Shown here: in pieces, positions 1-26,480 of the stretch
Layout of the letters: the number at the start of each line of letters is the position of its first letter
Position numbering within the stretch: the first letter of the stretch is position 1
DNA from: Hypanus sabinus
Lineage: Eukaryota
Length of the DNA stretch: 64,000 nt
Assembly (NCBI RefSeq): GCF_030144855.1
Contig: NC_082714.1
Coordinates: forward strand, 135,036,001 to 135,100,000
Direction of reading: 5' to 3'
Program-made: the position numbers and the translations under genes
The notes under the pieces: generated by a model
What the model was told of the DNA's origin: nothing
Database searches by the model: none
The model's input: only the letters and a program-made list of their open reading frames with translations

Positions 1-3000
1 ATTTTTCAGATGGAAGTATCGTGTTTGAGTTAATATTTGATAATTAATTAACAGAATATCCTACGATTGTGAAAGCAACTTTCTGAGAAGATGATTGTTG
101 CTCCAAAGGTACCTTTCAATGATTCATATAACATGATTACTCTGAAAAAATGAAATTAAATGAATTAAATGTTCTACCCTGTTTATTTAACTATATTAGG
201 AAATATAGGAATGTATTTAACTAGTTCTGTTTTTGATTTATCCCAATGTTGGAGTTGTTGAGTCTACACCATGGAGAAACACTTTCATAGGTGTTCATCA
301 TTCCAGATGTCTATACTAATGAATACTAAAGCAGCACAATGAACTGATAGACATGAATTAAATGTTAGCTTTTTCCTCTTATGGATGACATTTTGTTCAA
401 TTTGGTATAAAATCTATGAATAAATCCTTTTTATTGGTGCCCATGTTCTGCTTATTGTGTTAGAAAGCTCAAGGTTCATGCCAGATTTATACACTTAAAG
501 AAAATACATCTGATCAGGGTGCTATAGTTGTATTAAACAAAGAAACATGCAAGTGTTGAGGATTTGCTCATCAAAATAACAATGGTTTCTATAAGCAGAC
601 TGTCAAAATGCAGGGAAAATAAATGCTTTCTGCACTGAAAACAGTCTTGCTTTGCCATATTAAATGAAGGGTCTACTTCAACAATCCTTGTTTTGATGAA
701 ACCACACCCTTTCTCCTTGTAGTTGCAATAGAATTCCACCCATCCTCAGGTTCTAGATTTACAGCACATTAACTTGCGTCTTTGCTAAATCTGTTATTAC
801 GGAAGGAAGAGTTGATTTATAGACATGAATTAATATCACAGTGTTAAAGTTGTTGTAATAAAAATGTTGTTTTATTCTATGTTTAATTGATGATAGGTAG
901 CATAATTACGATACAACATTTTTATTCATACATAATTATTCAATCTCTGATACAGTATATGGTATTGAACCAAAAACATCATAAAATAATGCAAAGTATA
1001 TTTAAAAGAACCTTCTAAATACATGAAGATACTTTTCATAAAGTTAGAATAGGAATATATAGTTACTTTCTTAATATTATTAATAATTAATTGGGTCAGT
1101 TTGAAATGTGTACTTTTAAGAGTCATAACAAGTAAATGAAAGTAAATGAATTCCTTTTGGAATTAAGCTAACCTCTTGGCTATTGTAATATAACCTAATG
1201 ATGCAAACACTTTTCTTTCCCACCTTCCTGCATTAGGCCACATTCACCTGTGTTTTGACATAGTGATGTAGCATTGTGCTAACTGGGAACAGAGGATGTG
1301 ATCACAGCAAAGAAAAATCATAAACCTTTCTCACTGCTGATCTCACTCACAAGTTCAAAGATCACTGCAGGAAACATGTACAGGGTGGAAACCATGACAG
1401 TTAAATGCAGCAAATAGAAATCGAAATACTTAGTATACTGTGGTCCGTAATGGGATACCTGCATGCTTTTATTTGCAGTGCTAATTCCAAATTAATCTAA
1501 TTTCATGACACTAATTTTCATTACTATGTGTTTTAATAATTTCTTAAATGCATGCACATGTTATTTCTACTGTTATTTGCTTTTTAGTAATCATTTTGGG
1601 GGGGCTACTGTGTTAAAAATACACAGCATTTTGCTTTAGATTTTTTAAATCTACGATGAGAAATTGAAATTCTTTATTCTAAGTCTGGATATCCTTACAA
1701 TCTGAACATTGTTAGTTTACAACGTCTAATGCAAACATTAAAAATTGAGAAGAGTGCCACGATTTTAAAACAATTTTAATTGTTGATTGTAATGTCATTA
1801 ATTAAATATCACTGCTGTATAAGAAGGACAAAATATTGATTTGTCAACACCCATTCTATATGAATAGGTATTTATTCAAAAACATGTTCACATTCTATCT
1901 TCTTCAGAAATGAGTAGAGGGGTTCAAAATAAAGTATTTCTAAAATCACTTAATCGGCTGATGGTATCCAGTAACTAAGCTATTTACTACTAGACTTTTA
2001 TTTTCAATTTTAGACTAATATGCTATTCCGTGGCATCAGCCCTTTTGATCCATCTCGTAGAGGTACAACATCAAAATGCCATTATTCTGTGCATGGTCAA
2101 TGCACATGGCCAGATCCTCCAGAATTACAGAAACGTCATTGTTAGGACGTGTTAGCGAAAGGCATTGTTGAATCTCCCGAAATCGTGTGTAATTTTATTC
2201 AGCTATATAATGACAAAAGCCATGTGATGTAAAACTTGTGAATATTGTTAACGCGAAAGACAGCTTCCTTATTTAATCAAGTTTCTCGTGTTTAGGCCAA
2301 CAGCATCAAATAAAAAAAAATAATTATAATGAGGTCCTGATTGAATATGAGAACTATTGCACGAATTCTATAATAACAGGTCCATTAACCCCTACGTGGA
2401 AGATCTGCGACCGTTTCACCTGGATGACAAAAATAGATTTTTTGTTCTAAATCAGCTTTAGAGTTAACAACGCGTTATTCTGTATCTATTAAATTCAGCA
2501 AATATTAACAGAATCATAAAATAAATTGTATTTGAGAGCACCTTGAAAGAGACCACAATTACATTTTGGGTTCTGAAGAAGGATGTACTTCTATCCTTCG
2601 TGATGAAGTTTCTCGGTTAAGTATGAAATATACCTGAAAAAGCCCAATAAGAGGTAAAGTATTTTTCATCTACTGCGTGCGAATTTCTCCCGATTGATCT
2701 GTTTCCTTATTTCGTCTGCTGAATGTGAGCGCAACATTATCAAGTGCTTTGCTTGATCAACTTAATTTGAACAGACGGCAACACTCTGCTGGATTGTGAT
2801 TGTTTAAGCAGGTGCTGTACAAAATCTTCTCACTTGCCAATGTAATGTTTACATGTATGGGTTTCCTTATAGGCCATGGACGCCAAATTGCTGCAGCAAA
2901 TCAGAGAATCAGTGCACGTTCTCTGACTGGCTAAAGGTAAATTTGTTTATGGGGAGCCGCGTCCTGCATGATGCCACTGGGCAATCAATGTTCAGCAAAT

Positions 3001-6000
3001 TTCCCCAACTGCTACTCAATTTATTTCTTTTGGCGTTTCAAAGAGATGGAGCAAGAGGCAAAGCACAAGAATATATATATTTTTTCCAAAAAAATAGCAA
3101 TAAAACATAAGATTTCGTGAAACTGTTTAGTCTGGTTTTGGATCAAATCGTTGTTGCCCTGGTCTTATTTAGTCAGAGAAAGATCAGATCTCATCCAAAG
3201 AAGATATTGCACCAATAAATATAAAGGATTCCTTATAGTTTAATTATTCTGCCCAAAGTTTCTAGTAAGCTGCTCACAGAACTTCTAACTAATTCGGAAT
3301 ATTGATCGAAATGTGTTAAGTTTCCCAAGCTCTGATAGGTTTCATGTGTCCTACGTGAATCATATGTGGAAGTAACTAAGTTTATTGAACTTTATCAATA
3401 TAGGAAGCTACGCCGAATTAACGCTAGGACACGCTTGCACTAAGTCACTTTATCGTAATCATATGACGCTCTGAAAACCTAATCATTTCCAAACCTTCAC
3501 AATATTACCTTAGATAAAAGACTTCTCCACGAAAGATGCAGGAATGGGGCCTCCTACCCGAAAACTGGCTTTATCAAAGCCAAATCTCGCCCTGTCCACA
3601 GTGCTTAATAAACAAACTAGATACTGTATTCCTCCTCTTTGAATGAAATCATACATCGCATGTTGAACCTGCTGCTCCTGACAGTGAAAAATACTATTCT
3701 CGCCCATCCAGATGTAAGTCATATTCTTTAATGCAGTTCCTTTCTGATACAATTAACATGCCACTTAACCGCGTGCTTAACAGAGTTTTCAAAATTCTGG
3801 AGTCATATGGGATAATAATGAATACAGTCCTATCTTGACAAGGTGTATAAAAGTAATCTTTGAAGAGAGGCCTTTGTGGTGGGTAGACCAGTACAATGCA
3901 GAGGCAGGAATGCGAGCCTTTCTTACCTGAAACTGACAAGATTTCAACATTTCCCGCGGGAACTCAGGTCGGGTGATTGCCTCAAAATCAGCCTAAAAGC
4001 AACATCCAAACTCCAGTTTGGTCCATGTATATTGCTAAATAATACAGAACTCAAGTTAAAAGTATCTGTGGTCGCACTTGGCCTGTGCCTGTTATGGGGT
4101 GTAGTGACCGATGGCCACAAGGAATGTGGCCCTATTACCATTTTGTTTTGTCCCATGCTGAAGCTGGCCCCCTTTCACGGCTCTCCATTCATTCAAATCA
4201 TCGCTCTCACTCTTTATTGTAAGAGACGGGCTTTCAGGCCTTGAATTGTTCCCTCTTAACAATGAATTCTTTTGTTTAAGTCTTTCTTTTATACTTCACG
4301 ATAATGCCAATGGTACTTCAGGCTCGGGTCTCTGCAAATGTTTGCAAAATTATACATTTATATCTGAAACTCAGAAACGGCACTCTACAACAGACGCCAA
4401 AACATTTAAGCCCAATTTGTTTGCGAAACTGTAAAATGTATCAAAGGACACTGTAGCGAAAGACCATTTCTCATTTGGGCTGGCGGATAGTTAAAATGCG
4501 TTAATAATATGCAACATACATTTTGATTGTTAAAACAATACCTTGTGGAAACAAAGCTAATTGGGATTAAGAAGAATAGGAATAAATTGATATATAAACT
4601 GGACGGTGTGTTCTCTTCCTTCCTGAGAACAATTCTTTCTCGCTTTAATTATATAAGGTGCGATCAGGACAAGCACAGGAAAATCAAACGAATGTAAGGA
4701 AATGGGCAGGCATAAAATCCTTCAAAATCCAGAGAAGGACCCTGCAAAAAATAAAATGAGGTAATCTAATGGCGTGCTATCAAGTTAGTCTGCTGTGAAA
4801 TATGATTTGATTTCAGCTGTAAGTCAAATATGACTTTTGCAAATTCAGGAGAAGTTGTATCTATTTTAGTTGAATTGATGAATGATTTGTCAGGCACATG
4901 TTTCCCGCTGTGATCGTGAACCCGTCACTCGCCAGGAATGTAGGCATGATCTCCCCGGACAGCAACAGCAACAACAAAATCAGTGACCACAGCATCTGAG
5001 CGATTCCCAGGGATGGAGAAATACATAGCATTGTCTTCAGATGCAATGACGGGACAAGTGCTAAGCACACCAATATGAGGCCAGGTCAGATATTTAAAGC
5101 GCGCTTCATAGGGTAAAATTACCATATGGCACAATCAACACGGCCAGGCCTAAATTTTATGCCCCCGCCCCCTCACACACAACTAGTTATGTAAAATATT
5201 AAGCAAGGGGAGGTTAACTATGTATTGTTTCATTTAAAGGAGGTTGGTCTGAGTGACCTATTAAACCAATCAACTGGGTATGGTAAGTTCTTTTCCAGTC
5301 TATTGTAATTGTGTTCACTGCTTCTAGGACAGATACCTTTTCAAGAATCTATATAAGCCCAGTGACACATGAAAGGGAAGTTTTTACTTATCTATACTGA
5401 CATATCACTTTTAAGTATTAATAAGTCAATGATTTCTGCAGGCAAGTTCGGATTCCCGTGGACAAATATTGACGTTTTCTGACCTCATTTTTTAAAAATG
5501 CGATTTTTTTTTCAGATCTATGTGCATAAGCATCTAGAGGTTTAGTTTCCAGGCTGTCACTGTTCACTATGGAACTTATATAAGCAAACGTACCAGGAGT
5601 TAGCACACCTGGTTTGACATTTTAACTCCACAGACGGATAGAGTTTTGAAAATAACTTGTTTACCGTGAGTTGATAAAGCTGCCTTTTTTGGAAATTATT
5701 GTAACATTTTGGTATTGTTTACACTGAAACTGAAATAATTCTACAGTGTGTTGGGATATACGGAGCTTGTCGCTCCGGTTGCATGTGACTACCTATGCTC
5801 ACTCCCATCTTCAAAGGCAGATACCTTCATCGCTTTCTTTAAACTGAACATCTTTCAAAAAAAAATCAAAATAAGCCTACTTGGATTAATATATATGGCA
5901 AAGAGCGGAAGATAAAGATATTGCAGACACTCTTTAAAACTAAATTATACAAACAATCTAAATTAGGAATATTATAAGCTTTGATGTCAGAAAACAATCT

Positions 6001-6908
6001 GCAACCAATGTTTTACATGTTATGATTACTATTGCTTTCCCTGCCATTAGAAATAAAAGTTTACCTGACCACCTTGGTTTTCCTGTTTAAATTATACAAG
6101 ACATGATTTAAATTGCATTGCACAGTCGGAGTGGACAGCAGGTGTATTGGTTTGATGCAACCGCACATCGGAGGTAAGACAATAGAGCTTGCGGAAATAT
6201 GCCGAACTCTTTAGCTAAAGAATTGTTAAAAGATGCATAAAATATCGTGCTGAAGCTTATAGATTCCTTAAAATATTAAAATTGCACTTCCAGCAACCCT
6301 GAGACTCAACCTTACACACTCATTGTTAAATAATTTCCGATTGCAAAAAGAAAACATTGACAATCTATTTTATGGTAATCGTTCGATAAAATAGTTCTAT
6401 ATCTAATATCGTCAAGCTTCAACACATCCTAAATGCCCCCGTGCATTGAAGTTAAGAAGTGTGGTCGGATAGTGGTTAAATTTAACACTGATAAAATATT
6501 TATTATCTAAAACATCTAAATTGTTTTCCGACTTCATTTATGGGCCGTTCTGCTGTAAGGTGTGTCCCTCTTTTTTACTGCAAACAGCTTTACTTCCATG
6601 GATAATTCAATCACCGAAAACAGAACATACACCCTGACAATAAAAATGAATGAACATCAAGTGGTTTTCGCATTTCAAATGATAAGTTCAAGTGAAAATA
6701 TAGTGGGAATGTTTCTAAATTTTATTTATAATAAAATCCCGATTGTAATTTGTCAAAGTTCCCACTGCAGATCCTTACATAACTACCTCAACAATAAGCA
6801 ATGCTTGTATGCAGGCTATTGAAGAATGTCTATGGAGGCGTGCAAAAAGGTTTTTGACCCCCTGATGGTGTTTATTTGCTGCTTAGGCCAGGGAGAGAGC
6901 GAGAGCAA

Positions 6909-6952
6909 GGGGGGGGGGGGGGTTGGAAGGGAGGGGGAGGGGTGGGGTGGGA

Positions 6953-6987
<35 letters not shown>

Positions 6988-7033
6988 GAGAGAGAGAGTG
7001 AGAGAGAGAGAGAGAGAGAGTGAGTGTGTGTGT
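6909..7033 (+). repeat. Poly-G/G-tract array followed by (GA)n and short (GT)n microsatellites
   Basis: G14, then GGGAGGGGGAGGGGTGGGGTGGG, then ~70 nt of GA dinucleotide repeat. Confidence 0.95.
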
Positions 7034-7048
7034 CATTGTAATGCAAAA
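7034..7048 (+). promoter_or_regulatory. Sox-Oct (POU) composite element
   Basis: CATTGTAATGCAAAA is a Sox site directly abutting an octamer-like site, fitting the canonical composite motif. Confidence 0.5.
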
Positions 7049-8879
7049 GGCGCAGCTTCGTTCAGATGGAGATTGAAAGGCCGAGAAGCCGACAATCCGG
7101 GACATCGGCGTATAACGTTCAATTTGTCCCCAGCATTGAATGAATTTGCCAGTAAAATATCAGCTTCTTTTACAGATATGAATCATGAGAAATGAAGAAA
7201 CCTCTCGTCTGAAGGTCGAAGTGACCGCAATCTGCACATGAAGCATATCCAGGCTAGTAACTTTGCTGGTTAATGTAGCGATGCTTGTCTAGCGCATTCT
7301 CAAACATCAGTTTGCGTTTGAGCTATTAATCAAGATTAAAGGTCACTTTATTTTGATCTGTCATAATAGTGTGTGGGGGCTTAGCAACAACAATTTTGCG
7401 GAAATATGTATATTTTTACAAGAGCCGGCCAGAGAAGGTACGGCACGTGGGCCTCTGAGTTCCCTCCGTGTATTAAAAAATTCGTCCCTCGTCTTGCTTA
7501 AAATATTAAAATAGTCGCAAAACTTGAAACGCGCGTGATTCTGCATTGAAAAGCCACAGTTCCTCACTAAATATATTCTGCGTTGTTGAGAAGGAAGCGC
7601 GGCTTCATTGGAGTTCGCTGTTTACGAGATAGGTTGAATTCCTACTAGTACATGTGGCTAGGATGTGCCCGAACAGATTTAGCTGTGTAAATATTAGATA
7701 ATATTTTCATCTATGAATAGCATTAGATTTAAAGTTAAATACAGGCATTTGGAATGTTTTTTTGTTAAAAGAAAGCGCGAGGTAGAATGATCAGAAAAGC
7801 TTCACATATCTCGGTTCTTTGTCTGATTTCTAACAGTGGGTGGTAGGAAAGAGAAAGGAAGAAAATGGCGAGTAGCGGTCGTTTACATTTTCTTCCGGTA
7901 TTTCAATCGATTTTGCCTGCACGCTATTGCGTGTTGTAATAATTGAAGTGCATATTCACTCTTCAGAATATGTGCATTAAATGAATATTTTTATTGGAAA
8001 CATTTAAGTAACATCACAAAAGTCTACGAAAATAATTGATTAGGCAAAGAACAGCCAAGTATCTTTTGGCGCCTTATATAAAATTATTGTAAACTCTATG
8101 ACCAGGCCTGTTTATTTAACCTATTGCTCTATAGGAAACCCGCATTCATATTAAAATCTACCGCCACGTTTTATTGCAAACGGCAAAATGCTTACAATTC
8201 GTAATTGGCTGTACCTTATACTCAAACATATTTGTTTGCCCATACATTGTATTTATATATTTCAAAAAGACAAGCTGTATAGAAAGGCTTGCACGTCAGA
8301 ATTGGTGGAATTAAATATTTTTACATAAATAATGTATCATTAACTGCTGTTCTTTTTTAAGATGCAGTTTAGATATTTTTCATTATACACCGATTAATAT
8401 ATTAAGTTTTCGGCTGCCTAAGTGTATACCACAATTTGAAAAAGCGTAATCCTAGAATAGGATTATCCCTGTTATCCCAAATTCGTTCCTAAGTGGTTAA
8501 ATAGCAGAGAAATACATTCAAAGCTATATGTTGTAATCTATTCGTAACTTAGAAGACAGTGCGGTTCATTTAAAATGAACTAGTTGAATGGTATATAAAT
8601 GTATTATATAGTGGTTTGATTCAGCTAGGCTTATTAGGCTTTCAATCATAAATTGTTTTACTTAACTGCAGTTTGCATCCTCTAATTTAGCCTAAACACT
8701 TCATGCTTTCGATTCATATAAACGATTAATGCATCCCTCTGCAACCAATATGTTTCGATGTACGTTAGAGGTCCCACTTGATTTCATAGCCATCAGAAAT
8801 TCAGCACTGTCAGAGATGCGTTTGGATTAAGTAACAATGAGGTCACCCTCACAGGTTTAAAAAAAAAGTGCTGATTCGT

Positions 8880-8900
8880 TTCAACACCATGGACAGCGAT
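8880..8900 (+). promoter_or_regulatory. RE1/NRSE (REST-binding) element
   Basis: TTCAACACCATGGACAGCGAT versus consensus TTCAGCACCnnGGACAGCGCC. The 2-nt spacer is canonical, the GGACAG half is perfect, and there is one core mismatch. It lies ~1.6 kb upstream of miR-124. Confidence 0.75.
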
Positions 8901-9435
8901 CTATCCGCTCCAAACTGTTAGTAAGTCATTTATCGCTCGCCGCCTCGCTCTAGCTTTAACAACGAACAATTATGAAATATTAATTTCTCTTAATACTTCT
9001 AATCATTGAAGTTAATCTAAAGTCAAAGAATCTATACGTGGACAATGCTGAGTATTGTGAATGCACAACCCCAGGGTTACATGTTCAGTATATGAGACTA
9101 ATGAGTAATGCCTTATATATGTAATCGTGAAATGTTTAAGACAAAGAGTGGGTAGATGGTATTTTTTTTAATCAAAATACGTAGTGGAAATTGTTGTTTT
9201 CCAAAACTTCAGTCGTCCGCTATTGTATCAAATGTGAACTGTTTATTTATAAACTGAAATGGGCCTATGGTGAGACCAGAACTACTTTGCAGGACGGGGG
9301 TTTACTGATCCAGCAATACGTCAATTGAAAGAAACTGTTTACAAGATAGCATTCGTTTAGAATTTCACTCCTTTAGTTTCAAGGACATCCTGCTGATCAG
9401 GATTTGGTTAATGGAGGAGAACTTCTGTCCCACGA

Positions 9436-9543
9436 ATGACGTCATGGGTCCAATGTAATCCTCTTGTGCTGAACCCAATCAGCAGATGTGCCGCTTGTCT
9501 GGATGGAGAGCGATTAATCCGTTAGACTGGATCAGATCAGCTG
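9436..9543 (+). promoter_or_regulatory. Putative pri-miR-124 promoter/proximal enhancer cluster
   Basis: Palindromic CRE ATGACGTCAT (9436-9445), TAATCC (9456-9461 and 9515-9520), CCAATCAG (from 9475), and E-boxes CAGATG (9483-9488) and CAGCTG (9538-9543), all in CpG-dense sequence ~1 kb upstream of the hairpin. Confidence 0.5.
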
Positions 9544-10065
9544 CACGCTAGGACTGGACCAAACTGCCTCTAGTCCGATAAAGAGACCGGATAAATTGTA
9601 GAAGCTTTGTCGCCTCTTTAACACTCTGGGATGGAGGAGAGGAAGAGGAACGTTGTTCAGCTGATCGCAGCTCTAACTGTTATCTGCGATTCCTTCTCGT
9701 CGATATTATATAACGAGATGATCACGAAAACAGAGAATACCGAGAGATCAATCGTATTTTTCTCTTCACACCGCGCTCTTCGAATGAAGCAAAAAAAAAC
9801 GCAAACGTATTTGGAGTTCGTTAACAATGGATGTGTCAGGGACATTTTCTTCTGACGCAGGGGCTATCCGACAATGGAACCGGTAAATCTGCTAAAGGCT
9901 AGAGGTGCTGTACACAGTAATTATGGGTTTAGGTGGAATAATGATGTACAATGTCCTGGCTACACTGTAATTTGGGAAGAAAAGAAGGATTTTGCAATCG
10001 ATCTTAAAAGGCTGCTCTTGACCATGGAGATGAACTGGAAACAAGAGCAAAAAAGCAATATTCTT

Positions 10066-10221
10066 NNNNNNNNNNNNNNNNNNNNNNNNNNNNNNNNNNN
10101 NNNNNNNNNNNNNNNNNNNNNNNNNNNNNNNNNNNNNNNNNNNNNNNNNNNNNNNNNNNNNNNNNNNNNNNNNNNNNNNNNNNNNNNNNNNNNNNNNNNN
10201 NNNNNNNNNNNNNNNNNNNNN
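10066..10221. other. Assembly gap (156 N)
   Basis: Run of N. Confidence 1.
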
Positions 10222-10451
10222 TAACTTTCTTTAGCAACGGCGAGGGTGGGGGCGAAGGGCACGGAAATACGATAACGAACAATGAAGGTTATGTTGGTTT
10301 ATGTTATATATATATATATATATTTGTATCCAGCCACTTCGTCACTATGGTTGTTTATAAGAAATAAGAATCTGGATTTCTTAGCTATTAACATGCAACG
10401 TTTAGTTTGGCACTTACAGTCTAAAGGAGAGTTTATGCTATTTGGTGATAC

Positions 10452-10545
10452 TGACTCTTGCTCTCCGTGTTCACAGCGGACCTTGATTTAATGTCCATAC
10501 AATTAAGGCACGCGGTGAATGCCAAGAGAGGGGCCGTCAAACTTC
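10452..10545 (+). ncRNA. MIR124: miR-124 precursor, probable miR-124-3 orthologue; 5p arm 10466-10487, mature 3p arm 10504-10525
   Basis: Exact miR-124-5p CGTGTTCACAGCGGACCTTGAT and miR-124-3p TAAGGCACGCGGTGAATGCCAA, with loop TTAATGTCCATACAAT. A basal UG lies at -14/-13 (10452-10453) and a CNNC (CTTC, 10542-10545) at +17. The paralogue assignment rests on synteny with YTHDF1. Confidence 0.98.
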
Positions 10546-13104
10546 AGTTCTAATTTAATTGGACGCAACAGCCTGTTAAGCAACACAACATCACTAATTT
10601 ACGCTTATTTAATCAAATAGGGCATGTCTTTTTAAACTAATTTTTAAAAAGGTGCTTTAGTAACACCAATATTGAAAGCATAGTTTCAGGCTATGTATAC
10701 CCTTAAAATGTGAAATAAATACAGCAGAATATGTAATAGATTTAGTCAATTACATGCAGAGATTTATCGGAGACGTAAGACACAGAGAGTGAAATAGTTT
10801 ATAGTTGTGTGATTTGTTAATTCCTTTTAAAGACCGGCTTTTTTTTCCTGATCTGTATCACATTGTATCTGTACGTGCCCGGCTGTTGTAAATAGAAAAG
10901 CTTGGTAGATCATGTACTTAATTCATTTTCCGCTAGATTAGCCGAGTTCTCTTCTGTATTTCTTAAATCCCTACTATTAAATAACATGTGTTTCACAAAA
11001 ATACTCTGGTTTCAGCAGTTGAAATTATTTTGTGTTCGTATGTGTCTCGATAATGTTCCAAAGAGCCAGAAGCAGAATGGACGCTATTCACTTATCTGAG
11101 CCCCAGGTTAATGCCAATCGTCCTTCATTGCTCAATGTCATTTGATAATAAAATAATGTCATGAAATGCTGTAGGGTTCTGAATAACAGATTTTGATGGG
11201 AGCATAGTACCAGCGGAACCTCGTGCCAGTAATGTTCAAAACTAATATCTTGTTCAGAAAAAAATTACAAAATTACAGATTTTCAAATTGTTAAGTCTTA
11301 TTCCTTTAACAAAACGTCCCTAATCTAGTTTTGATTAAATCACATTAATTTCTTCAGTCTTTCCTCTGGGACTGTTAAAAATAGAGTGTTCGCAGTTGTC
11401 AAAATGCAATCGCACATATTACAAGATTTCATTTTAAGCGGATTATTTAAGAGATACAGAAATGAGCGATATGATAATTGCCATCTGTGATGGTAAAATT
11501 GAGGATTTTGTTTAATACGTCAGTATTTTTTATGAGCTGTTTCGCGCTAACCTAGAATTCAACAAAACAACCTGGACTTGATCCGGGTTGAAAAATTTAT
11601 CATATACTTTGCTCCTTCTGACTTGCAGAATAGAGTTAGTTTAAAGTGTGTTAATGTGCTCTCGTTGTAGGGGTGTTGCTTGTTTGTTTATTAAAAAGGT
11701 GTACATATTGTCCTCTTTAAAGTATTAGTTAAAACCGAGTTACTGAAACAAGGTTTAACACCATCTATTCGTACAAAGCAGTATAACACATATTCACTAA
11801 TTTTAACAAATCGATCCAGTGATATATAATTGCCAGCTGATTCACATCATTATAGGTGAGATCGCCACCAAATCATGCGGTTGGTTTTAAAAACGAGATC
11901 GATAGGAATTAATTCAAAATCATATTGTTTTGATTGGGGCCGTTTCCGTGTTGTATCTTCATATTGTGAAAAGCATTTCTAGTGATTCAAAGTGTTCTCA
12001 AGTCTTTAGTGCAGTACTGCGTACCACTTCGGTAAGTATAAAAGGGCTCGAAAGGACAGGGTTCTCTATTCCGCTGTGTGAGACACGCCTGGAATTGGTG
12101 CGAAATTGTAGCATTGCGTTGTAAAATGTACAATTGTTGCGGGATATACATCTAATAGAATGTAAATTGTGTTTTGTATGTGTGCAGATGGAGGACATCA
12201 ACGAACAGGACGCACAAGAGTGCGAATTGAATGGTCTTGGATACTGGACCAATGCAAAAAGAAAATAAGAAAACGAGCAATAGTATTAGATCCCCTTAAA
12301 GATTCCGAATATGACATTTTGGCATGATTTTTATTCTTACAGTTTCATTTGTCAAATCTTGGATGTTCGTGATCTTCTCCTCTGTCTGTTGGTTAATAAA
12401 ACCAAAGTATGCCAATATAATCAATTAACCACGTGATTGTTGGCTATTGGTGGAAATAAATGGCTGTTTTCTTTTATGGTCTATGCTATTAACAAAACGG
12501 TTCCTTCGAAGGAGGCTTCTTTATCGTAATTATACGATATACCTAAACAGAATTTGTCGCAAAATCTCCATGTCAATTTTATCCGGAAGAGACTGCATGC
12601 GGCTTTTCGAGATTGCGCTGCTGTCCCCACTGCACGAACTGGGATAATGCGGTAGAGAATTGGCGAGCAGTCTGACTGCAGTGCCGGGTGTCAACAGAGC
12701 GCCCCCTTCAAGCTTGCACCCCAACTTAACGAGCCTGGAAAGTCCAACGATTGGAACCAAGATTTTTATGCTTATCTTTTTGCTAATGATATTTACGATT
12801 TAAAACATACAGTCTCCCAAATAATGCAAACATATGCTGGTGTAAAGGAAACAAGTTCAGCTTCAAATAGTCCCTAGACAACACAGAATTTCATAAAATA
12901 CGTCCTTGTATATTTTTTCCGCAGCTGTAAATGTCGCATTCAATGTGTAAAGCTGGCAATCCTGAAAACATCTCAGAATGGGCTGAAAGGTTCAGATTAT
13001 TTTTTTTCGTTTTAGGAGAGGTTGATTAGCCTTAACCAAAACAATTCTGCTTTTCTGAGTTTACAATCTCGCATTCTTCTGAGCAACTTTACATATTAAT
13101 GGCA

Positions 13105-13260
13105 CCTTGGCTTAATGTTTCATCCCAATGACAGCATCTCCAACAGTGCAGCACTGCAACAGCCTTGCACGGGAATGTCATATTAGACTAAGCGTTCAAA
13201 TCCTGGATTAGGGTTGAGTCGACAATATTTTGATTTGGCGGTTGTATGTTCAACGCTGAT
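13105..13260 (-). mobile_element. Degraded DeuSINE (AmnSINE1/SacSINE1-like) fragment
   Basis: cttaatgtttcatcccaatgacagcatctccaacagtgcagcactgc...gaatgtcatattagactaagcgttcaaatcc resembles the reverse complement of the recalled DeuSINE core (TTTAACGTCTCATCCGAAAGACGGCACCTCCAACAGTGCAGCACT...). Confidence 0.65.
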
Positions 13261-16200
13261 ATAACGTTTTCGAGACCATTAGTTCATGTAGATTACTAAA
13301 TAGGGGCACGTTGCGGTAAATCTTGGATTTATAAGACGATTAAGCAGGAATGGTGGGGGGGGGGGGAGACTGGATTTCTGAAATGAAATGACGACAATAA
13401 TCATGACCATGACTAGTTTTGATGGCCAGGTAAAACGTCGCAAGAGCAGAGCGCAATACTGACATTGTAACATATTCAGTCGTTCCATTTTCCAAGTCCA
13501 TCTTTTATGGAATCAGATTCACAGATTTTATATACACTTTTGTTTTCACAATAGATTCGAAAATGGACATCAGAAGAGTAGGATTAAAAACACAATTCTA
13601 AAAAATACAAACTTGTAAGATATTTATATTCAGATAAATATTCAAAATGATTGATCGTTCTGAAGCAGATCAATTAAATGCATTCCGGTGCATTTTAGCT
13701 CCACTGCTAACAGTGGCGTCAATCTTCCTCTGAATGAAAAAGACACCTTCAGTAACCCATAAGAGTTCAAGTTACGTTAATGGTGTTTAAGTTTCCGCCG
13801 TTAATATCCTGGAAATTGAGCCTGTATTTCTCAGTAATGGGTCACACTCGCCGATTTATAAAATGTCAATATACAGTATAAAGCTTACAGTGGGATAATT
13901 GATCCGGCGCCACACTTCGTCTCCATGGGTCATTTCGAACGTAATGATGAAGTTTTACGGTTAGCACGGTTTAAGCTCTGATTGTTCTCAAAAACTTTCA
14001 TTTATTTCGCAGTGCCTTTAATAACCCAACGTCCATGCGCAACTCGCAGGAATTTTTGGCCATCTCAAAAATAGTCCAGATACTTCAACAGGGTGAAATT
14101 TAAGAAAATCTAAAAAGAGAGTCGAAATACTTAGGGAGGGAATTTCAGAGCTGAAGGTCTTGCCAGCTGAAAATATGGAGGCCAATGGTGAAACGATGAA
14201 GAGCGCAGATACGTAGGAGACTAGAACTGAAGTAGGTCAAGGGCAAGCACCGGAGTAGATAAGGAAAACGTTCATTGAAGCCCAACCCATTATTTTGCAA
14301 TACCAAGGTAGCGGCAGTTAATTCGAAATTTACTTTTGAAAAGCACCGTCGAATTCTTATCAAAGTAGGAATGGATTATCCGTAACCCTTTATTAAGAAT
14401 ATCCCATCAACACCCAATGCCCTCCCTCCTGCAGTGTATGTTATGACAAGAGATTATTACAATCTTTCACGAAAAGCAAAGGGAGACATCCGGTCCTAAA
14501 TAGTCTGCCGTAATATGCGAGTTCCGCCGTTAGATTGACAGCGACATTTATATAAAATAAACTACTAGGTCTATTATTAGGTTTTAATGGAATTAAACAA
14601 ATCACAGTATTCTGAAATGCTTAAATGCTGGAAATACACAACAGGTCAGTCAGTGGTTGAAAAGAATAGAATAAAGATTAAGGGACGGAGCTGGTTCCCA
14701 ATTTAGATTAAAAGTTTTCATCCCAAACATTAACTTACTGTGATTGTTTTGGTTTTATAAATTACTTTAATGTACATTGTAACTTAGTGTATTTCCAATC
14801 TGTAAACCCTATTATTTGTCTAATTTCTATTCGAACTTTACTTTTTTTAAAAATTATTCGAAATAACGTTCGCCTTTTATATATAGGTTTGTTTATTTTG
14901 TTTAATCCTTCACATTAAATCTTTCTCGTCTTAAATAGAACTAAATTTGTAGCTTAGCTTCTATGAAAATAAAGAATTCATTTTATATCAAGTCCTAAGG
15001 GTAAAATCAGTTGATGAATAATACTGTTGATTTGGGTTTGATTGTATGTGTGCATACAGATGTGGCGTGTGGGCTAATGGTGGGCTGATAGTAAAACTTA
15101 TCAATGGATGAGGCCTCTGATAAACCTTGAGAAAAATTAAATAAGTAAGATGAAATTCAAGCTTAGCTTGCCGGTTAAAAATGTTTTTTTACTCCTCAAA
15201 CCACTGTTTACAACTGATACTCAAACCCTGCCAAGCCGATAGATAGAAAACCGTGAAAGCTCCTGTTTCCGGTAGTTCAAGGTGTTTTGAAAAACACTAG
15301 TACAGTGTTGGATAATGGTTGTCAAGTTTATATATAAAATATATATTATACTCTGGTGACACTCATAATGGACTGCGATGACGAATAGATAGGGATTTCG
15401 AACAATGCTCTCTCCCTTCAGAATTGACAGCTGAAAAACCCTATACTACGTGTTTGAGAGGGCACAGTTAGCTTTAAACAAACATTTTAAACAATTTTCT
15501 TCATTCATCTTTCGCTCAAATTTTACATTGATTTTAAAATATATTCAGTGTATGCCACAGGTTCAAGATTTCATAGGATAATAAGAATAATTGAGGAAAT
15601 TGATGGCTATGCAGAGTTGCTGCGATGACATATTATTGATACTTGTGTAGCCTGTTCCAGATTATGCTCATGTGGAGTCACAAAATATACCTTGCTTTTC
15701 AATTTTACATAGAGTTGTCTGAAATATTGTTCAAAATCTAGTACAGCCACCATCAAATTATCAATTATCAGCTTGCACTGTAACAATTTCCTAACTGGAT
15801 CTAAAGACTGGTTAAAATAAAATAATGTTACATGGAATCTCTCTGACATCCAACATCCACAGATTATAAACAAAATATACGCCCGAACACGGACATAACA
15901 CTTTCCAGAACTTGACAATAACTTCCATTTACTTCCCATATTACATCTTTGCGTCTTTGTTGCCTACATCAATATACTGTATATCAGTCTACTTCTAAAG
16001 GTCGGAATGCTGCGGTATCGCGACCAAAACACTTCCGTTGGGTTCTCGCAATATTCTGACCATAAAGCGATTTGATATTGCTCCACATTTAAACTCAGCA
16101 CGTTGGGGGTCACGCTGTGAAATCGGACAAGGAGTGCAATGAGATTCTTGCCTTATTTTTTGATTAAAATGTGTCGTTTCTCTATTTTAAGGCTATCAAA

Positions 16201-18699
16201 CCTTAAAGAATCCTGCTGTTAAATCCTCTGACTGATCTAGTCTGTACCATGTGACTGCGCACAGCGGAATGACAGAAATGTCGAATTTCTACATCCTTCC
16301 TGCTGTTTACTGTTGCCGCAGTTTTATTATTGCTTTCTGCCTGTTTTAGCTTTAAAAGTCTGGAATTATCTTTTAACTTCCTTACCGCCTTCTATTCATC
16401 ATTCAGGTAATATTTTATACTTCTATTTATTTCTCTATTTTCACGAATCTTCGAATTAATGACAGCTCATTTTGTCAATCCAATCGTGGTTTCGAATGCA
16501 ATAAACCCCTCCGCCCCCGCCCTAATACTTCTCAAAGCAATACATTAGATATATGGACCCAGTTCCATAGACAGATAATTAATTTATCGTTATTTTATAT
16601 AGAAATCGCTTTTAACTCTGTTCTGAGCAGAAAGTACATTTGGACAGGAAGTGATAGTAGTAAAACCATTGGGGTGATGGGGGCGGAACAAAATGGAGAA
16701 GTTTTTTTTGGTACCAACGCTGCAGCAATTAGCTCAGATTCATGATGTTTACTTAATAGCTTCCTACATCACTCTGCAGAGTACTCAACCCACACTGCCG
16801 AGTTAGCTAAAATGTGTGATCGACCATTCTCTTTCTTAGAATTTCGTGGACCTTATAAAACGGAAATGCACCATTGGGTGCATCCAGTCCGTCTTGGCGT
16901 TTATCGGACTGCAGAGCTTTCACATGTTAGGCACGTGCCCTTATTAGTCGAGTCCTCATACTTCTTTGTACCATTCGGTTTAATTTTTAAATAATGATGA
17001 AATTTACTTATGTATATTTTATTGGATATTTTCAGGTAGTCCCTATCATAGCCCATGCCTTCATTACAGTTTCTCTTCCACAGAAACTGTTACAATTCAA
17101 GTGTTTATTCATAATATATTCTAAAGTGTGGGATTTTAAAAACTGCATTCAACCTTAAATATTATACTGGAATACCTTGCATTCTATGATATTGCACAGT
17201 ATCCTATTTTATTTAGTGCTCTGAGGTTTGATTCTAAAATCCTTTGCACCAAACTGTGAAATTCCATACATGAAGCCACAAATCCCATTATATTGCTAGT
17301 TTCACTTTCAGTGCCTTATCTATCTGGAGAACAGGTTTTCAAAGCATCTTGCAAGTGTAACTCTTTGAATTGCACCATTTTTTCCACCATCGAAATTTCT
17401 CTTTCAAAATATTACTGCATTTAACCAAAAGATCCCATTTCACCTGCTGATATTTAACTCTACTTTTTAACCTTTCCGCAGTACAGTCATTAGTACTGAT
17501 TCATTTGGCCATTGGAATTATTATTATTATACATTCTATCTTAGTATCCCCTGCTAATAAGAAACTTCTTTAACCCCATGCCTTCCTCAGACTGGTACTG
17601 ACACTCAATTCCATGAAGTCATTACATATACTTTCCCATTTCTCATCTTTCTCTAGCCATTAGTAACCTCAATTACTTCAACTGATTTTCACACAGGCCT
17701 TACTATTTTTTTTGTTTGGAGCTTCATTCAAAATGTTTCTGGTTGTTCATGAATACACCATACACTGAAATTCATCCATCTGTTTTCTGACTACAAGACT
17801 TAAGTTCGGTAAGCATGGCCTTTATCTCTGATAAAAGTTTATTTATATAATATCTGCATCTGTATGTAAAACTTTATATTTTGCATTTATTTCCTTTTAT
17901 GCTACATATGGGAAGTCTGGGGATAGGATTTTTAAAGAAAGTATAATTAGAATGTTATACAAATGAGGGAAGTGTGTAAGTTGACATGTTTCAATTAAAA
18001 AAGTACTTATACATGGCTAAGCAATAGTGCATGTAGAGTCTATTGTGGATTCATTTATCTTCAACATATAAGTTAAATGCTATTTGTTGCTGTATAAAAC
18101 CAGTAGGAAACAACTCATTTTCCAGCTCTCTCTAAATCATTATATTTCTGATAAAGTCTTAAAATATGTGCGTGGAAAGACAGTTGTGTTTTAAAATGCA
18201 AATTACTAAAAGATCTAAAGTTTAAAACTAATGTCTTGCAATGTAGATGTGTTTCCATTTAGAAATGAAGATTCTTATTGGCAACATTAGCAGATGAATA
18301 GAATATTTGCTCAACCAAAATCTGTATAAAAGAATGAAATTAACTACAGCACACCATGTTCTAACATCATCATCCTTGATCAAAATAGTGATATGGTCTC
18401 AAAGTAGTGTGGATTAAGTGAAGGATATAGGTAGGAAATCTTGTAGATATTGATTGATAGCATAGCTTGTTGATGTTATATTGCAATGTGTGCGGAATTC
18501 TGACTGAATGAGACCAACTCCTAGACAGAATCGCTCACATCTTAGTTTAGTAGTTTTTGAAGGCAGGGAAACAATCATATTATGGACTTATATTAGATCT
18601 TTCACTTTACCAGCATCTTTCTCAGTACAGCTGCATTATTCCATAGGATTACATAAAGGTGTTACATGGAAAGGGAATATATTGAATTACATGACTTCT

Positions 18700-19830
18700 T
18701 CAGATTTAATTTTTTAGCAAATGTTTGATGATTTAATGAAGAGTGTTGATAAATGGTATGCAGAACATGTCATCTATATGGACTTTCAGAAGGTACTTAA
18801 TTACTATCCCATACAAACCCCCAGCCAGCAGAATTGATTTACAGGGTCACGTATGGATAGATCTATTTAAAAAGGCAGAAGGCAGAGAGTAATAGTAAAT
18901 GCTTCTTTTTCAGATTGGAAGATGGTAGGGAGTGGTGTTCCTGTCTAGTGAATACTGGGCTCATTGTCTTTTGATATATGTTAATAACATGGGTGTGTAA
19001 ATGTTAGTGACTTTTCTAAATCTGCAGTGGCACAAATTTAGGAAGACATGTATAGACTGTCTCAAGGGGCTGACAAATGACAAAGATGAAAGTTATCATA
19101 GTATTTATAAATTGTAATGTATTTATATTAAAGTAATTAAAATCAAAGTAATTAAAGTAATTATAAAGTATTTATAAATTGAGAGACAGAACAAAGTCAA
19201 AGTCAAGGTTATTGTCATATGTACATGTATTACATGTATGCACAGGTGCAATTAAATACTTGATTTGCAGCAGCATCACAAGGATAAAGCATCATGTAAG
19301 CAGCATTCGTAAGAAAAAGATAAATACTTTTTATAAAGAAGCACAATTGGAATGAATAAAGCAGCCTATTTTAATACAACGTGGTCAAATTGTTAAACTC
19401 TAGTCATTAAGGTCAAGGAGACAAAATAGGATTTAAGATATTCCTTAGGATATGTAGAAATGGAGAGTCTTATGGAAAATCCTTGAAGGTGGCTATCATG
19501 ATGTGGAAAGATTAATAAAGCATATATTATTCTGGGAATTATTAATAGAACCATATAATACAACAGCAAGGAAGTTACAGTGAATGCACACAACCACTAA
19601 CTTGTACTCATCAAAATGTAGGAAATACTTCAGGTTATGATCTGAAATTCATGACCTCTAAAACTAGTGAAAACATAATCAAGTGCTTCAATGAGGAACT
19701 GTGTAGGTCATTTAGACAGAATGCTTAGCAAGGCTAAAGGGAGAGAGCCCAGAGGAATGGGGTTATAAGGATTCTTTTAATAGCATTCTGCAAAGATACA
19801 ATGGACAGAATGGTCATTCCCCCACTGCCA
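18700..19830 (+). mobile_element. Highly degraded CR1 LINE fragments, interrupted by an opposite-strand LINE tail at ~19195-19330
   Basis: tctatatggactttcagaaggtactt (IYMDFQKA-like), gtaggagtggtgttcc (SGVP), and CR1 3' region motifs. Confidence 0.6.
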
Positions 19831-22286
19831 CAATTTAAAAACTGCAAAGTTACCTGCTGAATTTTGAAATAATTAGTAAATGTGACTGGTTTTTATCAGT
19901 AATTGTATATATTATATTTACATTTTTCCAGTAAATACTTTCAGTTTCTTTATGTTTTAAAATAATAAAATAGAACTACCTTTACTTGGTAATCTTCTTT
20001 ACACTAACTTTCTCCTCTGGTCTCCTAAAGGTAGTGGTACATGCTGGTCACAATGTCTCTTCCTGAAATATGGTTCTACAGGCTTCTGTATCTCTTTGAT
20101 GTGAACATTCTTCTTATACAAGTCTGGATTGTGAATAGAGACAGACTAATAGATAATATAAGGTATCAAACAATTCCTTCATCCAACAGCTTTCATAAGA
20201 TTACTTGAAGGTCACTAATTTGCTTCTTAGATTATGATTGATTTTTTTTGTCTTTTGTCTCTTCCCATTTCCAAGATAAGTCAGACCGACTTCCAACCAC
20301 AAGTAAAATTGCAGTGGCTATTTCAGCACACTTGGGGATTCAATTTGAACCTGGCCTGCATAAGTTCAGCAGTACATTAGAAACACTGAGGGACAGCAAA
20401 AGCCTAATTGGCATTGGGACTCCCTCCAAAGACACTTATTAAATCACAAAGGAATACAGTGAGTCAGTCAACCCATATTTACCTAATTAACTTTACCTAA
20501 TTATTTACTACATTAACTTTTAATGCATGGAATAAACAGAATATAACATGAAGACCTTGGGGAAATTATTTATTTCACATGACTGATGCTTATCATCAAT
20601 CAGAGTGAATGAAACCATTGTCGGTTATCAAGTCAGGACACACTACAACCAGCTTCTCACTTGTCACACTGCCTGTTAAATGCAATTGTGACTTTAGGCC
20701 TAGCCCAAAAAAGATGAATGTTTTGAGTTAACACTGTTGGAACAGAGTTTTATGCAATGTTGGAATAGATTAGAAATTCAGCATTAATTGACAGCAAATC
20801 ATCCAGTCTGCGAAAAGAGCATGCTGTCTTTATCCCCTAAGCCCCATTATATACCTGAATCTTACAAGGACCTTACACTAGGGATACTAAATGCAAAATC
20901 AAACCCAATGGGTACTCGTAGGCTGAGATTTTTTTTAAATGAATACTCAAGTTTATTATTCATATAATGAATCAGGAAAATCAGAACTTAACTATTAGAA
21001 GCTTGATAATTTAATCTTTTTTTCTAAAATGTGTTTAAGTAATATCATGCCTGCTCACTAGAGAAGTTTTGAGTCACATATCACAAATTTTATAGTTTAT
21101 TTTGGGCTGTTTTCTACTTTTTAACATATTTGCTGATACTTCTGTAAATGCAAGGATCATATTTTGTATTAGGAGACACTATATTTACAAGAATAATCTT
21201 CTGATATTTAAAAGTGAAGTATAGAGCCTATTAAAATAAATACATATTTTGTCCATAATATTTGCACATTAAATTGATACAGCTTTTAAATTTTGCTCAT
21301 TTTTCAACTTTTACAAAGCAATGTCCCTCTGCCTAAGATGTCAATACCTTATCCAGCTCATAATTTTCTGTTCTTGGGGTTAGCTATAAGAGATGTGAAG
21401 AAATCACTTACTGGTTAGTAATTTTTTGTTGGAAAGTTCAGTGGAGACTCATGATGTAAAATGGAGGTCACCACCAAAGTTTTAAAAAAAGTAGTGAGTG
21501 AAGTCAAAAACAAAATCAAATCATCATCATATTGATTTAAAAAAGAACTTAGTGGCAGGTAATAACAAAGAAAGTTTGATTTTTGATGGAAAGGTTTAAT
21601 TAGAATAGCATTTAAACCTAGATTTTGGATAATTAAGTATTAATCAATACAGATTCCAAAAAGTCAGTAAAGCCACATGAAAACAAGGAAATAATACCAA
21701 AGAAAATAAAGAAACACAGAAGTACAAAAGGCAAAAATAAGTCAAACCTTTAGAACTAATTTAGAAATTCAGTATATTAATATTGCAGTAATAACTACCT
21801 TATACCTTTATGTCAATACAAAACACACTGTTTAAAAATAACAGCCTTGGGAACACATATGCTCAAGATGCCTACGCTCTAAGATTCAGATTTACAGAAC
21901 AACATTTCAAAGCAAAAAGCTTAAATATCATTAAAGAATTTCATCTTTATCCTATTTGTTCCAAGATATACATAACTTGTTTTCCTCATCTCAACCTTTC
22001 ATGTAAATTCTTTCCTAAACCAAGCTAAGGCTATGAAATTATTTCCAATGTGTGGTACCTTGAACTGAACATAAAGTTAAGGATGGACTTTATCAAAGGG
22101 TTAGCAGGACATCATTACTTACGTGCTCTTTGCCCCTATTAATAAAACCAAAGATCCATTTTAATCACCCCACCTTGTCCTGCTTATTATTCATGCTTTC
22201 TACCCATAAATTTTATCTAGCATTTCTCCAGCGTTTTCATGTCCTCTAGGTAGGCAGGTAACCTCTCTATGGCTTCCTATATATAT

Positions 22287-23412
22287 TTTTTAAACAAAAT
22301 ATGCTTTGTTCAAAAATAAAATTATGTACAATAAACCATTCAATGACACTCAATCCTTTACAAATGTTTCCATTAGTCTTTACATTTCCATACTTTTTGC
22401 CACCCACGTGGCACTCTGTTATTCCATATTTACATACCCTTCTGAGGGATATAAACCCCGCTCCCTACCCCTCAACTCCCACAGGAGAAGAACCCTAGAC
22501 TGTGGTCCTTCCCCACCGGGCCTTTGCAGTGGCTGCACCAAGTTTCAGTGTGTCCCCCAGCATGTACTCCTGCAGCTGAGAATGTACCAGTCGGCAGCAT
22601 TCTCCCACGGACATCTCAGTGTGCTGGTAGACCATCAAGTTTCGGGCCGACCAAAGAGTGTCTTTCACCAAGTTGATGATCTGCCAGCAGCACCGGATGT
22701 TGGTCTCCATGTGCGTCCCCGGGAACAGCCCGTAGATCAGAGTTCTCTGTTACGCAGTTGCTGGGGATGAACCTCGACACTGTCCCTTTCATCCTCTTCC
22801 ATGAACCCACCATGTGCAAAGAGGTGGGTCACCGACTCCTCCTCACTGCAGTCCTCCCGTGGACAGTGGGATGTGGAGATGACGTTCTGGGCATACAGGA
22901 GGGATCGGACTGGGAGGGCCCCTCTCACCGCCAGCCAGGCAAGGTCTTGGTGCCTGTTGGTGAGGTCTGGCGATGAGGCATTTTGCCAGATGAACTGGAC
23001 TGTCTGCTCAGGGAACCACCCCACTGTGTCCATCACATCCTTCTCCTGCAGTGCCTGCAGGACCTTATGTGCTGACCACTGCCTGATGGCCCTGTGGTCA
23101 AAGGCGTTGACCTGAAAGAACTTCTCTACAAAGGACAGGTATGGCGGCAACGACCAGCTGACAGGGGTGTTGTGCAGGAAAGGGGCCAGACCCTTCCTTC
23201 GTAGCCAGGGCAACAGGTAGAACCTGGGCACATAGTGGTACTTGGTGCCCACATACCTGGGATCCACACACAACCTGATGCAGCCACACACGAAGCTGGC
23301 CATCCAGGTGAGGGCGACATTGGGAACGTTTTTGCCCCTGTTGTCCAGGGACTTGTGCATGGTGGCCCGTCTGACCTGCTCCATCTTGGATCCCCAGACG
23401 AATCTGAAGATT
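22287..23412 (-). mobile_element. 5'-truncated Tx1-clade (L1-like) non-LTR retrotransposon, ORF2 C-terminus with frameshifts
   Basis: ORFs 22737..23438, 22616..22819 and 22495..22710 give IFRFVWGSKMEQVRR...HQDLAWLAVRGALPVR...CPREDCSEEESVTHLF (zf-RVT)...CWQIINLVKDTLWSARN. The block is GC-rich and has an A-rich 3' tail near 22287. Confidence 0.88.
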
Positions 23413-25574: not shown

Positions 25575-26480
25575 TCAGATCATATGACATAGGAGCACAA
25601 GTAGGACATTTAGCAATTTAATCATGGTTTATTTGTTTTCCCTCTCAATTCCATCTTCCTGCCTGCTCCCCATAATTCTGTCTTAATTCTGTGGTAAAAT
25701 TGACTATTTTATAATAATTTTTGGCAGCTTCACATTGATGACAGTACTAAAATTAGGATGTGGACACCATAGTAAGGGTGCAGAGGAGGTTTACAAGGAT
25801 GTTGCCTGGATTGGGGAGCATGTCTTATGAGAATAGGTTGAGTGAACTCGTCCTTTTCTCCTTGGAGTGACGGAGGATGAGAGATGACCTGATAGAGGTG
25901 TACAAGATGATGAGAGGCATTGATTGTGTGGATAGTCATAGGCTTTTTCCCAGGGCTGAAATGGCTGCCACAAGAGGGCACAGGTTTAAGGTGCTTGGGA
26001 GTAGGTACATAAGAGATGTCAGGGGTAAGTTTTTTTATGCAGAGAGTGGTGAGTGCGTGGAATGGGCTGCCAGCAACAATGGTGGAAGTGGATACGATAG
26101 AGTCTTTTAAGAGACTTTTGGATAGGGACATGGAGCTTAGAAAAATAGAGGGCTATTTCTAAGGTAAGGGACATGTTTGGCACAACTTTGTGGGCCGAAG
26201 TGCCTGTATTATGCTGTGGGTTTTCTATATTTCTGTAATATTCTTAACCCTTACTAATCAAGAACCTTTCAACCTCTGCTGTGAAGATACACAATTACCT
26301 TTCTTCCACAGCCTTCTGTAGCAATGAATTCCACAGATTTACCATCCACTGGCTAAAGAAATTCATCTCTGTTTTAAATGGATGTCCTTTTATTCTGAGA
26401 CTGTGCCCTCTGGTCCTAGACTCTCCCTACTGAAACATCCTCTCTGCTTCCACTCTAATCAGGACTTTCAGTATCAACAA
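25575..26480 (-). mobile_element. Older CR1 3' end, split by a nested insertion (pieces ~25575-25680 and ~26240-26480)
   Basis: catatgacataggagc...ctccccataa resumes as cccttactaatcaagaacct...gaattccacagattt after the insert. Confidence 0.7.
25756..26235 (+). mobile_element. CR1 LINE 3' fragment nested in the older CR1
   Basis: ORF MRDDLIEVYKMMRGID...TRGHRFKV, preceded by RVQRRFTRMLPG, with a ttctatatttct tail. Confidence 0.9.

Follow-up and report, generated by a model that had tools for sequence, protein, structure and literature searches.

A CpG-retaining, AT-rich domain around mir-124 in the stingray Hypanus sabinus: a probable germline-unmethylated island

Broad non-methylated domains and mir-124 loci of other vertebrates

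The closest described counterparts of the element analysed here are the non-methylated islands and DNA methylation valleys of other vertebrates. The element is an AT-rich domain of about 15 kb that contains a mir-124 hairpin and retains CpG, and it lies in a stretch of 64,000 nucleotides of the stingray Hypanus sabinus (NC_082714.1, positions 135,036,001 to 135,100,000, forward strand), referred to here as the window. In cold-blooded vertebrates, zebrafish among them, non-methylated islands combine a high ratio of observed to expected CpG (CpG o/e) with a background GC content, so that CpG-island predictors fail (PMC3583005). The broad islands of this class, studied in mouse and frog, belong to developmental regulators and are preferentially marked by H3K27me3 as Polycomb targets (PMC3583005). 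Methylation valleys, which measure 5 kb or more, stay hypomethylated throughout the germ-line cycle; they are conserved across vertebrates to zebrafish, show low deamination and are maintained with the aid of Polycomb (PMC5806489). At the human locus, hsa-mir-124-3 has three CpG islands, and its promoter is bivalent in mouse embryonic stem cells and fibroblasts (PMC3123655); each of the three human mir-124 loci is within a CpG island that becomes methylated in cancer (PMC3847369). Pervasive methylation has been described for cartilaginous-fish genomes, in which transposons are hypermethylated while active promoters and transcription start sites are unmethylated (PMC5437953), and skate methylomes contain hypomethylated regulatory elements (PMC10115646). 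For the red stingray assembly, calls of 5-methylcytosine from HiFi kinetics exist in principle (bioRxiv 10.1101/2025.06.08.657570).

We compared the stingray domain (positions 1951-17000 of the window) with each of these systems. Like the islands of Long et al. 2013 (PMC3583005), it shows a multi-kilobase rise in CpG o/e at a developmental regulator while GC stays near background, which is the cold-blooded form of such islands (CpG o/e 0.785 vs 0.20; GC 0.375 vs 0.373). However, the published islands were captured experimentally, through CxxC affinity, from seven species that include no cartilaginous fish, whereas the stingray domain is a sequence footprint and surrounds a lone microRNA instead of a transcription factor. 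With the methylation valleys of Li et al. 2018 (PMC5806489) it shares length (15,050 nt, against at least 5 kb for valleys and 3.5 kb for canyons), a lineage-specifying regulator in the form of the mir-124 hairpin, sharp edges and apparently few repeats, and a low-deamination signature may be common to both. The valleys differ in that they are recognised by their measured methylation and are reported to have highly conserved sequences; in the right half of the stingray domain, divergence is nearly as fast as in the flank. Mir124 and Ythdf1 are absent from the mouse, human and zebrafish supplementary valley lists that were searched (PMC5806489), and a literature text search for methylation valleys with mir-124 matched only unrelated virology. 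Finally, mammalian MIR124-3 belongs to the microRNA family of the stingray hairpin and likewise neighbours YTHDF1; mammalian MIR124 islands are GC-rich and are caught by standard criteria, whereas the stingray domain has 37.5% GC and 2.7 CpG per 100 nt.

Both the phenomenon and the locus are thus already known in other vertebrates, the domain is their cold-blooded form, and current understanding is not overturned. One point is mildly interesting: in this cartilaginous fish, at a locus with only a microRNA, the retention of CpG is uncoupled from the conservation of the sequence. The domain would extend to batoid cartilaginous fish, and to a locus with only a microRNA, the rule that key developmental regulators occupy large germline-unmethylated domains. 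In AT-rich cold-blooded genomes such domains escape callers based on GC, yet a change-point in CpG o/e delimits them to about 100 nt. For annotation, the domain indicates where the promoter of the primary miR-124 transcript (pri-miR-124) and the REST and Polycomb control elements are to be sought.

CpG composition, extent and internal structure of the domain

The boundaries were obtained by a two-boundary maximum-likelihood segmentation of CpG density over all 64,000 bases of the window, which placed the domain at 1951-17000 (fitted change-points 1950 and 17000). Inside, there are 411 CpG in 14,894 read bases (2.73 per 100 nt), with a CpG o/e of 0.785 and a GC fraction of 0.375. The left flank contains 10 CpG (0.51 per 100 nt; o/e 0.218; GC 0.307) and the 47-kb right flank 330 (0.70 per 100 nt; o/e 0.201; GC 0.373). 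CpG o/e is therefore about four times higher inside the domain than in its surroundings at a GC content that matches that of the right flank, and the likelihood-ratio chi-square for the domain is 338 (p ~7e-73). The initial annotation had described frequent CpG from about 2 to 17 kb despite low GC, with a steep fall near 17.0 kb, on the basis of manual counts of 19 CpG in 9601-9900 and 1 in 17101-17400. The counts are exact, and the segmentation agrees with both parts of the description. It had also proposed a sliding calculation of CpG o/e, and in 1-kb bins the ratio proved far from uniform: it is 0.21-0.25 in the first 2 kb, 0.50-1.07 from 2001 to 17000 and 0.05-0.40 in the last 47 kb, so that each of the 15 inside bins (minimum 0.50) exceeds each of the 48 outside bins (maximum 0.40).

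This contrast is confined to CpG and its decay products. GC per 1-kb bin is about 31-47% across the whole window, and GpC o/e is about 1.0-1.2 everywhere. TpG and CpA together reach 1.27-1.35 in the flanks vs 1.13 inside the domain. The remaining dinucleotides are nearly identical inside and outside, whereas CG and CA/TG differ strongly. On the right, the domain ends abruptly: after 16976, where the dense run of CpG stops, none follows until 17391, a gap that has a probability of ~1e-5 at the inside rate (mean spacing 37 nt). The left edge is more gradual, spread over about 1400-2030.

The domain contains a mir-124 precursor hairpin at 10459-10530 on the plus strand, which matches Rfam family RF00239 over the full model (1-72) with 85.9 bits against a gathering score of 49 (E=1e-18); the Rfam alignment contains the canonical mature arm, UAAGGCACGCGGUGAAUGCC. 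The hairpin was earlier described as the centre of the domain. It does lie within it, but about 1 kb to the right of the midpoint, so that 8.5 kb of the domain precede it and 6.5 kb follow it. Given its composition, the interval 1951-17000 is probably a broad non-methylated island, or DNA methylation valley, around mir-124 that is free of methylation in the germ line.

Compared with a classical CpG island, the domain shows CpG o/e above 0.6 over nearly its whole length but fails on GC content. By the definition of Gardiner-Garden and Frommer (GC of at least 50%, o/e of at least 0.6, at least 200 nt), 1,051 nt (7%) pass, in four pieces of 203-290 nt each (4903-5105, 6863-7144, 9390-9679 and 12523-12798), and by that of Takai and Jones (55%, 0.65 and 500 nt) none do. 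If only o/e is required, 1650-17308 is recovered almost continuously. The prediction that callers requiring GC above 50% would miss the domain is thus borne out.

Within the domain, CpG retention is tiered. First, a high-CpG block forms the left edge (1951-2750; o/e 0.95), followed by an intermediate block (2751-7000; o/e 0.55-0.57). The high-CpG core (7001-14750; o/e 0.88-0.94) contains the hairpin and an assembly gap. A second intermediate block (14751-16000; o/e 0.60) leads to the high-CpG block of the right edge (16001-17000; o/e 0.92), which stops at the sharp boundary. Pooled o/e is 0.91 for the three high blocks and 0.57 for the two intermediate blocks; the latter differ from the high blocks (p=2e-5) as well as from the flank (p=9e-18). 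The block 2751-7000 is possibly methylated in part or intermittently, and the tiering resembles a cluster of islands joined by partly protected linkers. At the junction of this block with the core, Tandem Repeats Finder reports a G-rich tract followed by (AG)36 (6907-7024, plus strand). GA repeats are often discussed near Polycomb-bound regions.

The assembly gap is a run of 156 N at 10066-10221, 238 nt upstream of the hairpin. The parts on its two sides are each at least 6.8 kb long and each qualify alone (1951-10065, o/e 0.74; 10222-17000, o/e 0.85), and therefore the finding of the domain does not depend on the gap. The listed open reading frames (ORFs) that span it (9874-10282) are artefacts of the N run.

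Divergence and substitution in related species, and a possible mechanism

Contigs of four related species (X1, X10, X12 and X16), drawn from 20 public runs with eleven organism labels that match parts of 14001-20000, were aligned to 12701-18700. All four are collinear with the window over the aligned parts of 12701-18697. Single contigs of each span the 17.0-kb boundary (X1, 12701-18697; X12, 12701-17490; X16, 16576-17205; X10, 16816-17772), and thus the right edge is not an assembly artefact. The CpG-poor flank at 17001-18700 (o/e 0.12-0.15) is orthologous and collinear in these species, so the drop in CpG is not simply the edge of a recent insertion either. The same contigs bear on the explanation that the CpG content is an artefact, whether of contaminant or mis-assembled DNA or of locally elevated recombination or GC-biased gene conversion. 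The gap inside the domain speaks for it. However, GC is 0.375 inside and 0.373 outside, all dinucleotides but CG and CA/TG match, the hairpin in the domain is the canonical vertebrate mir-124, and collinearity across the boundary refutes the artefact for the right half. We consider it extremely unlikely. Two small differences between species lie in the right flank: X10 is without 35 nt just beyond the boundary (17016-17052), and in X12 82 nt at 17490-17573 are replaced by 83 other letters.

Divergence from the window is 2.5% for X1 over the whole aligned stretch. For the other species it is 4.6% inside the domain and 5.7% outside in X10 (ratio 0.81; p=0.10), 7.1% and 8.3% in X12 (ratio 0.86; p=0.18), and 5.65% and 7.1% in X16 (ratio 0.80; p=0.06). 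The right half of the domain is not strongly conserved and diverges at a near-neutral rate. These values bear directly on the alternative that CpG was kept by purifying selection on dense conserved non-coding elements around mir-124, and not by a lack of methylation. Divergence is indeed 14-20% lower inside than in the flank in three species, and conserved non-coding elements abound around mammalian mir-124 loci (PMC3123655). However, the reduction is small and individually non-significant (p=0.06-0.18), and with 4.6-7.1% of differences in 12.7-17 kb most sites are free to change, which largely refutes selection there. The large YTHDF1 coding exon in the window is constrained and still has an o/e of 0.20, and in the segment of the domain that was scored for substitutions CpG was gained no less often than it was lost. 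The CpG is not explained by selection on the sequence, because divergence inside is near-neutral and the constrained exon is depleted, and this alternative appears very unlikely. That CpG has not decayed despite near-neutral divergence argues for maintenance of an epigenetic state and not of the sequence.

We then scored substitutions inside the domain on all 40 differences between X1 and the window in 12701-14734 (the first 40 of 732 rows), polarised with the other three species. This segment contains 124 CpG positions and 657 other C/G positions. On the terminal branch of the window there are 26 changes, including two CpG losses (one transition, CpG to CpA, and one transversion), five CpG gains and three C/G-to-T/A transitions outside CpG. 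The branch of X1 has 10 changes, with one CpG loss by transversion and none by transition, one CpG gain and four non-CpG C/G-to-T/A transitions. Pooled, this 2-kb sample gives one CpG transition in 248 site-lineages vs seven in 1314 for other C/G, a rate ratio of 0.76, and CpG gains outnumber losses by six to three. In methylated vertebrate DNA, a CpG:non-CpG transition ratio of at least 10 is expected. Here, inside the domain, a ratio of at least 10 is rejected (p=0.003), as is one of at least 5 (p=0.04). On this small sample, no CpG hypermutability is detectable. In the same segment, the transition:transversion ratio between X1 and the window is about 0.8 (18:22), and the 26 changes on the branch of the window, compared with 10 on that of X1, have a rate difference, errors in the reference or the shape of the tree as possible causes.

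Taken together, CpG near expectation at unchanged GC, an excess of TpG and CpA in the flanks only, near-neutral divergence and a collinear boundary support the initial annotation in its suggestion that the interval is a regulatory domain that was probably unmethylated in the germ line. Several points weigh against this reading. The domain is known from its sequence footprint and substitution pattern, and low methylation, Polycomb marking and a primary mir-124 transcript that starts within the domain are all predicted. Protection is not uniform, since the blocks 2751-7000 and 14751-16000 have an o/e of only about 0.57, and the domain is presumed to be continuous across the 156-N gap (10066-10221) that interrupts it. 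The substitution sample is small, with 40 sites in 2 kb (12701-14734), all inside the domain. If differences are left unpolarised, CpG positions differ by transitions 4.6 times more often than other C/G positions (p=0.02), mostly because three of these differences are scored as gains on the branch of the window. A root on the branch of the window, the reference, would lift the pooled ratio to about 2.6; the unequal distances of the species (2.5-7.3%) argue against a root in that position.

Two of these points would also fit a domain that is methylated today but has become so only recently, or that is unmethylated in some germline stages only, so that the footprint records a past state. The two blocks at about 0.57 suggest partial decay, and unpolarised CpG positions show an excess of differences. 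However, the two latest lineages, which represent about 0.5-1.3% divergence each, show one CpG-to-CpA loss against seven transitions at non-CpG C/G, and more gains than losses. Furthermore, valleys are stable through the mouse germ-line cycle and conserved to zebrafish (PMC5806489). The chance that the footprint is only a relic is slim.

If the domain is indeed unmethylated in the germ line, the following mechanism may apply. mir-124 would be transcribed on its own, next to YTHDF1, from within an unmethylated island. The rest of the genome would be methylated in germ cells and would have lost about 80% of its CpG through deamination of 5-methylcytosine, with the flanks of the island, gene bodies included, among the methylated parts. 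The domain itself would long have been unmethylated in germ cells, so that its CpG content would approach what unmethylated DNA reaches at equilibrium, with a base composition that stayed AT-rich. By analogy with other vertebrates, the unmethylated CpGs would be read by CxxC-domain proteins. In the germ line, in the embryo and in non-neural tissues the locus may be silent and carry Polycomb H3K27me3 or bivalent marks; these marks, together with TET activity, would keep DNMT3 away. The domain would include the pri-miR-124 promoter with proximal elements and enhancers that are active in neurons, a candidate REST site among them, and REST may add to the repression outside neurons. Insertions of transposons would not be tolerated or retained in the domain, being selected against.

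A broader proposal, which we consider possible and somewhat doubtful, is that gnathostomes inherited the MIR124-3 methylation valley from their common ancestor, more than 400 million years ago. It would form a self-contained 15-kb unit around a lone microRNA, unmethylated and closed to transposons, in which most of the sequence drifts near-neutrally while the epigenetic state and its boundaries are inherited and selected, and elasmobranch domains of this kind would be readable from CpG o/e alone. If true, germline-unmethylated regulatory domains could be mapped from sequence only in the slowly evolving, pervasively methylated genomes of elasmobranchs.

Genes, repeats and motifs in and around the domain

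We searched the window for genes to which the domain could belong. mir-124 is the only Rfam family that reaches its gathering score in the window and the only match in 1500-17500 at E up to 1; no tRNA or SINE (short interspersed nuclear element) heads were found. None of 11 in-domain ORFs tested contains a Pfam domain, and the longest in-domain ORF so searched, of 110 amino acids (15607-15939), has no homologue in a large protein collection; long non-coding RNAs and exons too short for the ORF cut-off would go unnoticed in these searches. That all 15 kb belong to mir-124 is presumed from the absence of another recognisable gene there. In an alternative explanation, the valley belongs to some other gene that went unrecognised, either a developmental gene that codes for protein or a long non-coding RNA, with mir-124 as a passenger, or else two independent islands have been joined wrongly at the gap. 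As much as 8.5 kb of the domain lies upstream of the hairpin, CpG retention is tiered, the gap at 10066-10221 lies in the middle of the domain, and short exons and long non-coding RNAs would evade the searches, all of which would suit this explanation. However, the ORFs have neither Pfam domains nor, for the 110-residue frame, a homologue, and mir-124 has no Rfam competitor at E up to 1. A misjoin is opposed by a CpG density that remains high to both edges of the gap, as expected for a gap within one domain. Another owner of the domain, or a false join, is thus unlikely.

The identity of the microRNA locus can be judged from its neighbour. A large YTHDF1 coding exon lies at 60832-62436 on the minus strand, 50 kb downstream of mir-124, as an ORF of 534 amino acids with a Pfam YTH domain (E=1e-49). 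It is 100% identical to the YTHDF1-like protein of Hemitrygon akajei (XP_072917914.1), 86% identical to YTHDF1 of elephant shark and 83-84% to that of tetrapods, and about 70% identical to YTHDF3; the solved YTH domains in the PDB place YTHDF1 first by a narrow margin only. Despite this strong protein conservation, CpG o/e in the exon is 0.20, which is consistent with gene-body methylation. Human MIR124-3 presumably adjoins YTHDF1 in convergent orientation, and we take the paralogue that is linked to YTHDF1 to be MIR124-3. The stingray mir-124 is linked to YTHDF1, as MIR124-3 would be in distinction from MIR124-1 and MIR124-2, and its locus is most likely the counterpart of mammalian MIR124-3.

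Regarding control elements, an RE1/REST-like core, CAACACCATGGACAG, with one mismatch to CAGCACCNNGGACAG, is located at 8882-8896 on the plus strand, 1.6 kb upstream of the hairpin and within the high-CpG core. It is not significant by count, as 15 of 100 shuffles give at least two matches at up to two mismatches.

The domain was also described in the initial annotation as poor in transposons, with abundant transposons beyond it. The first part is supported by the position of the repeats. Within-window repeat pairs cover 0% of the domain vs 6.3% of the right flank, with all of their families located at 24-58 kb, and the sole reverse-transcriptase-related ORF, with a zf-RVT domain (22737-23438, minus strand), is outside the domain. 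In the contigs of the related species, high-copy sequence inside 12.7-17 kb amounts only to bits of about 35 nt. The second part is only partly verified: when 31 ORFs outside the domain were compared with Pfam in search of transposon proteins, one zf-RVT match was obtained besides the YTH exon, and thus the zf-RVT match and the within-window repeats are what supports a transposon density there. A transposon-poor domain is therefore plausible and verified in part.

One of the short high-copy bits lies at 14623-14655 (about 33 nt; AAATGCTGGAAATACACAACAGGTCAGTCAGTG). In each of the four related species many unrelated contigs match it, their loose ends flanking the match on either side, and its summed depth is 95-430 compared with a baseline of 5-18. 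The piece resembles part of an elasmobranch interspersed repeat of very high copy number that lies within the domain. Outside the domain, the stretch 22001-24000, which contains the zf-RVT ORF, is richer in GC (46% GC; o/e 0.34), and a repeated unit with the translation LFSLE.RRMRDDLIEVYKMMRGID occurs at 25853-26144 and 47731-48018. The stretch and the units at 25.9 and 47.7 kb are remnants of long interspersed nuclear elements, all of them outside the domain.

Finally, the boundaries of the domain contain no CTCF-like motifs; the window has just two matches, which begin at 25968 and 38920. The match at 38920-38933 on the minus strand, CCACTAGATGGTAG, is near-consensus and coincides with 38905-39404, the sole 500-nt window outside the domain with a CpG o/e of at least 0.6, in a zone at 38.0-41.2 kb where the ratio is mildly raised (0.30-0.40). 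Between mir-124 and YTHDF1, the interval 38905-39404 may thus represent a short insulator or enhancer that is free of methylation.

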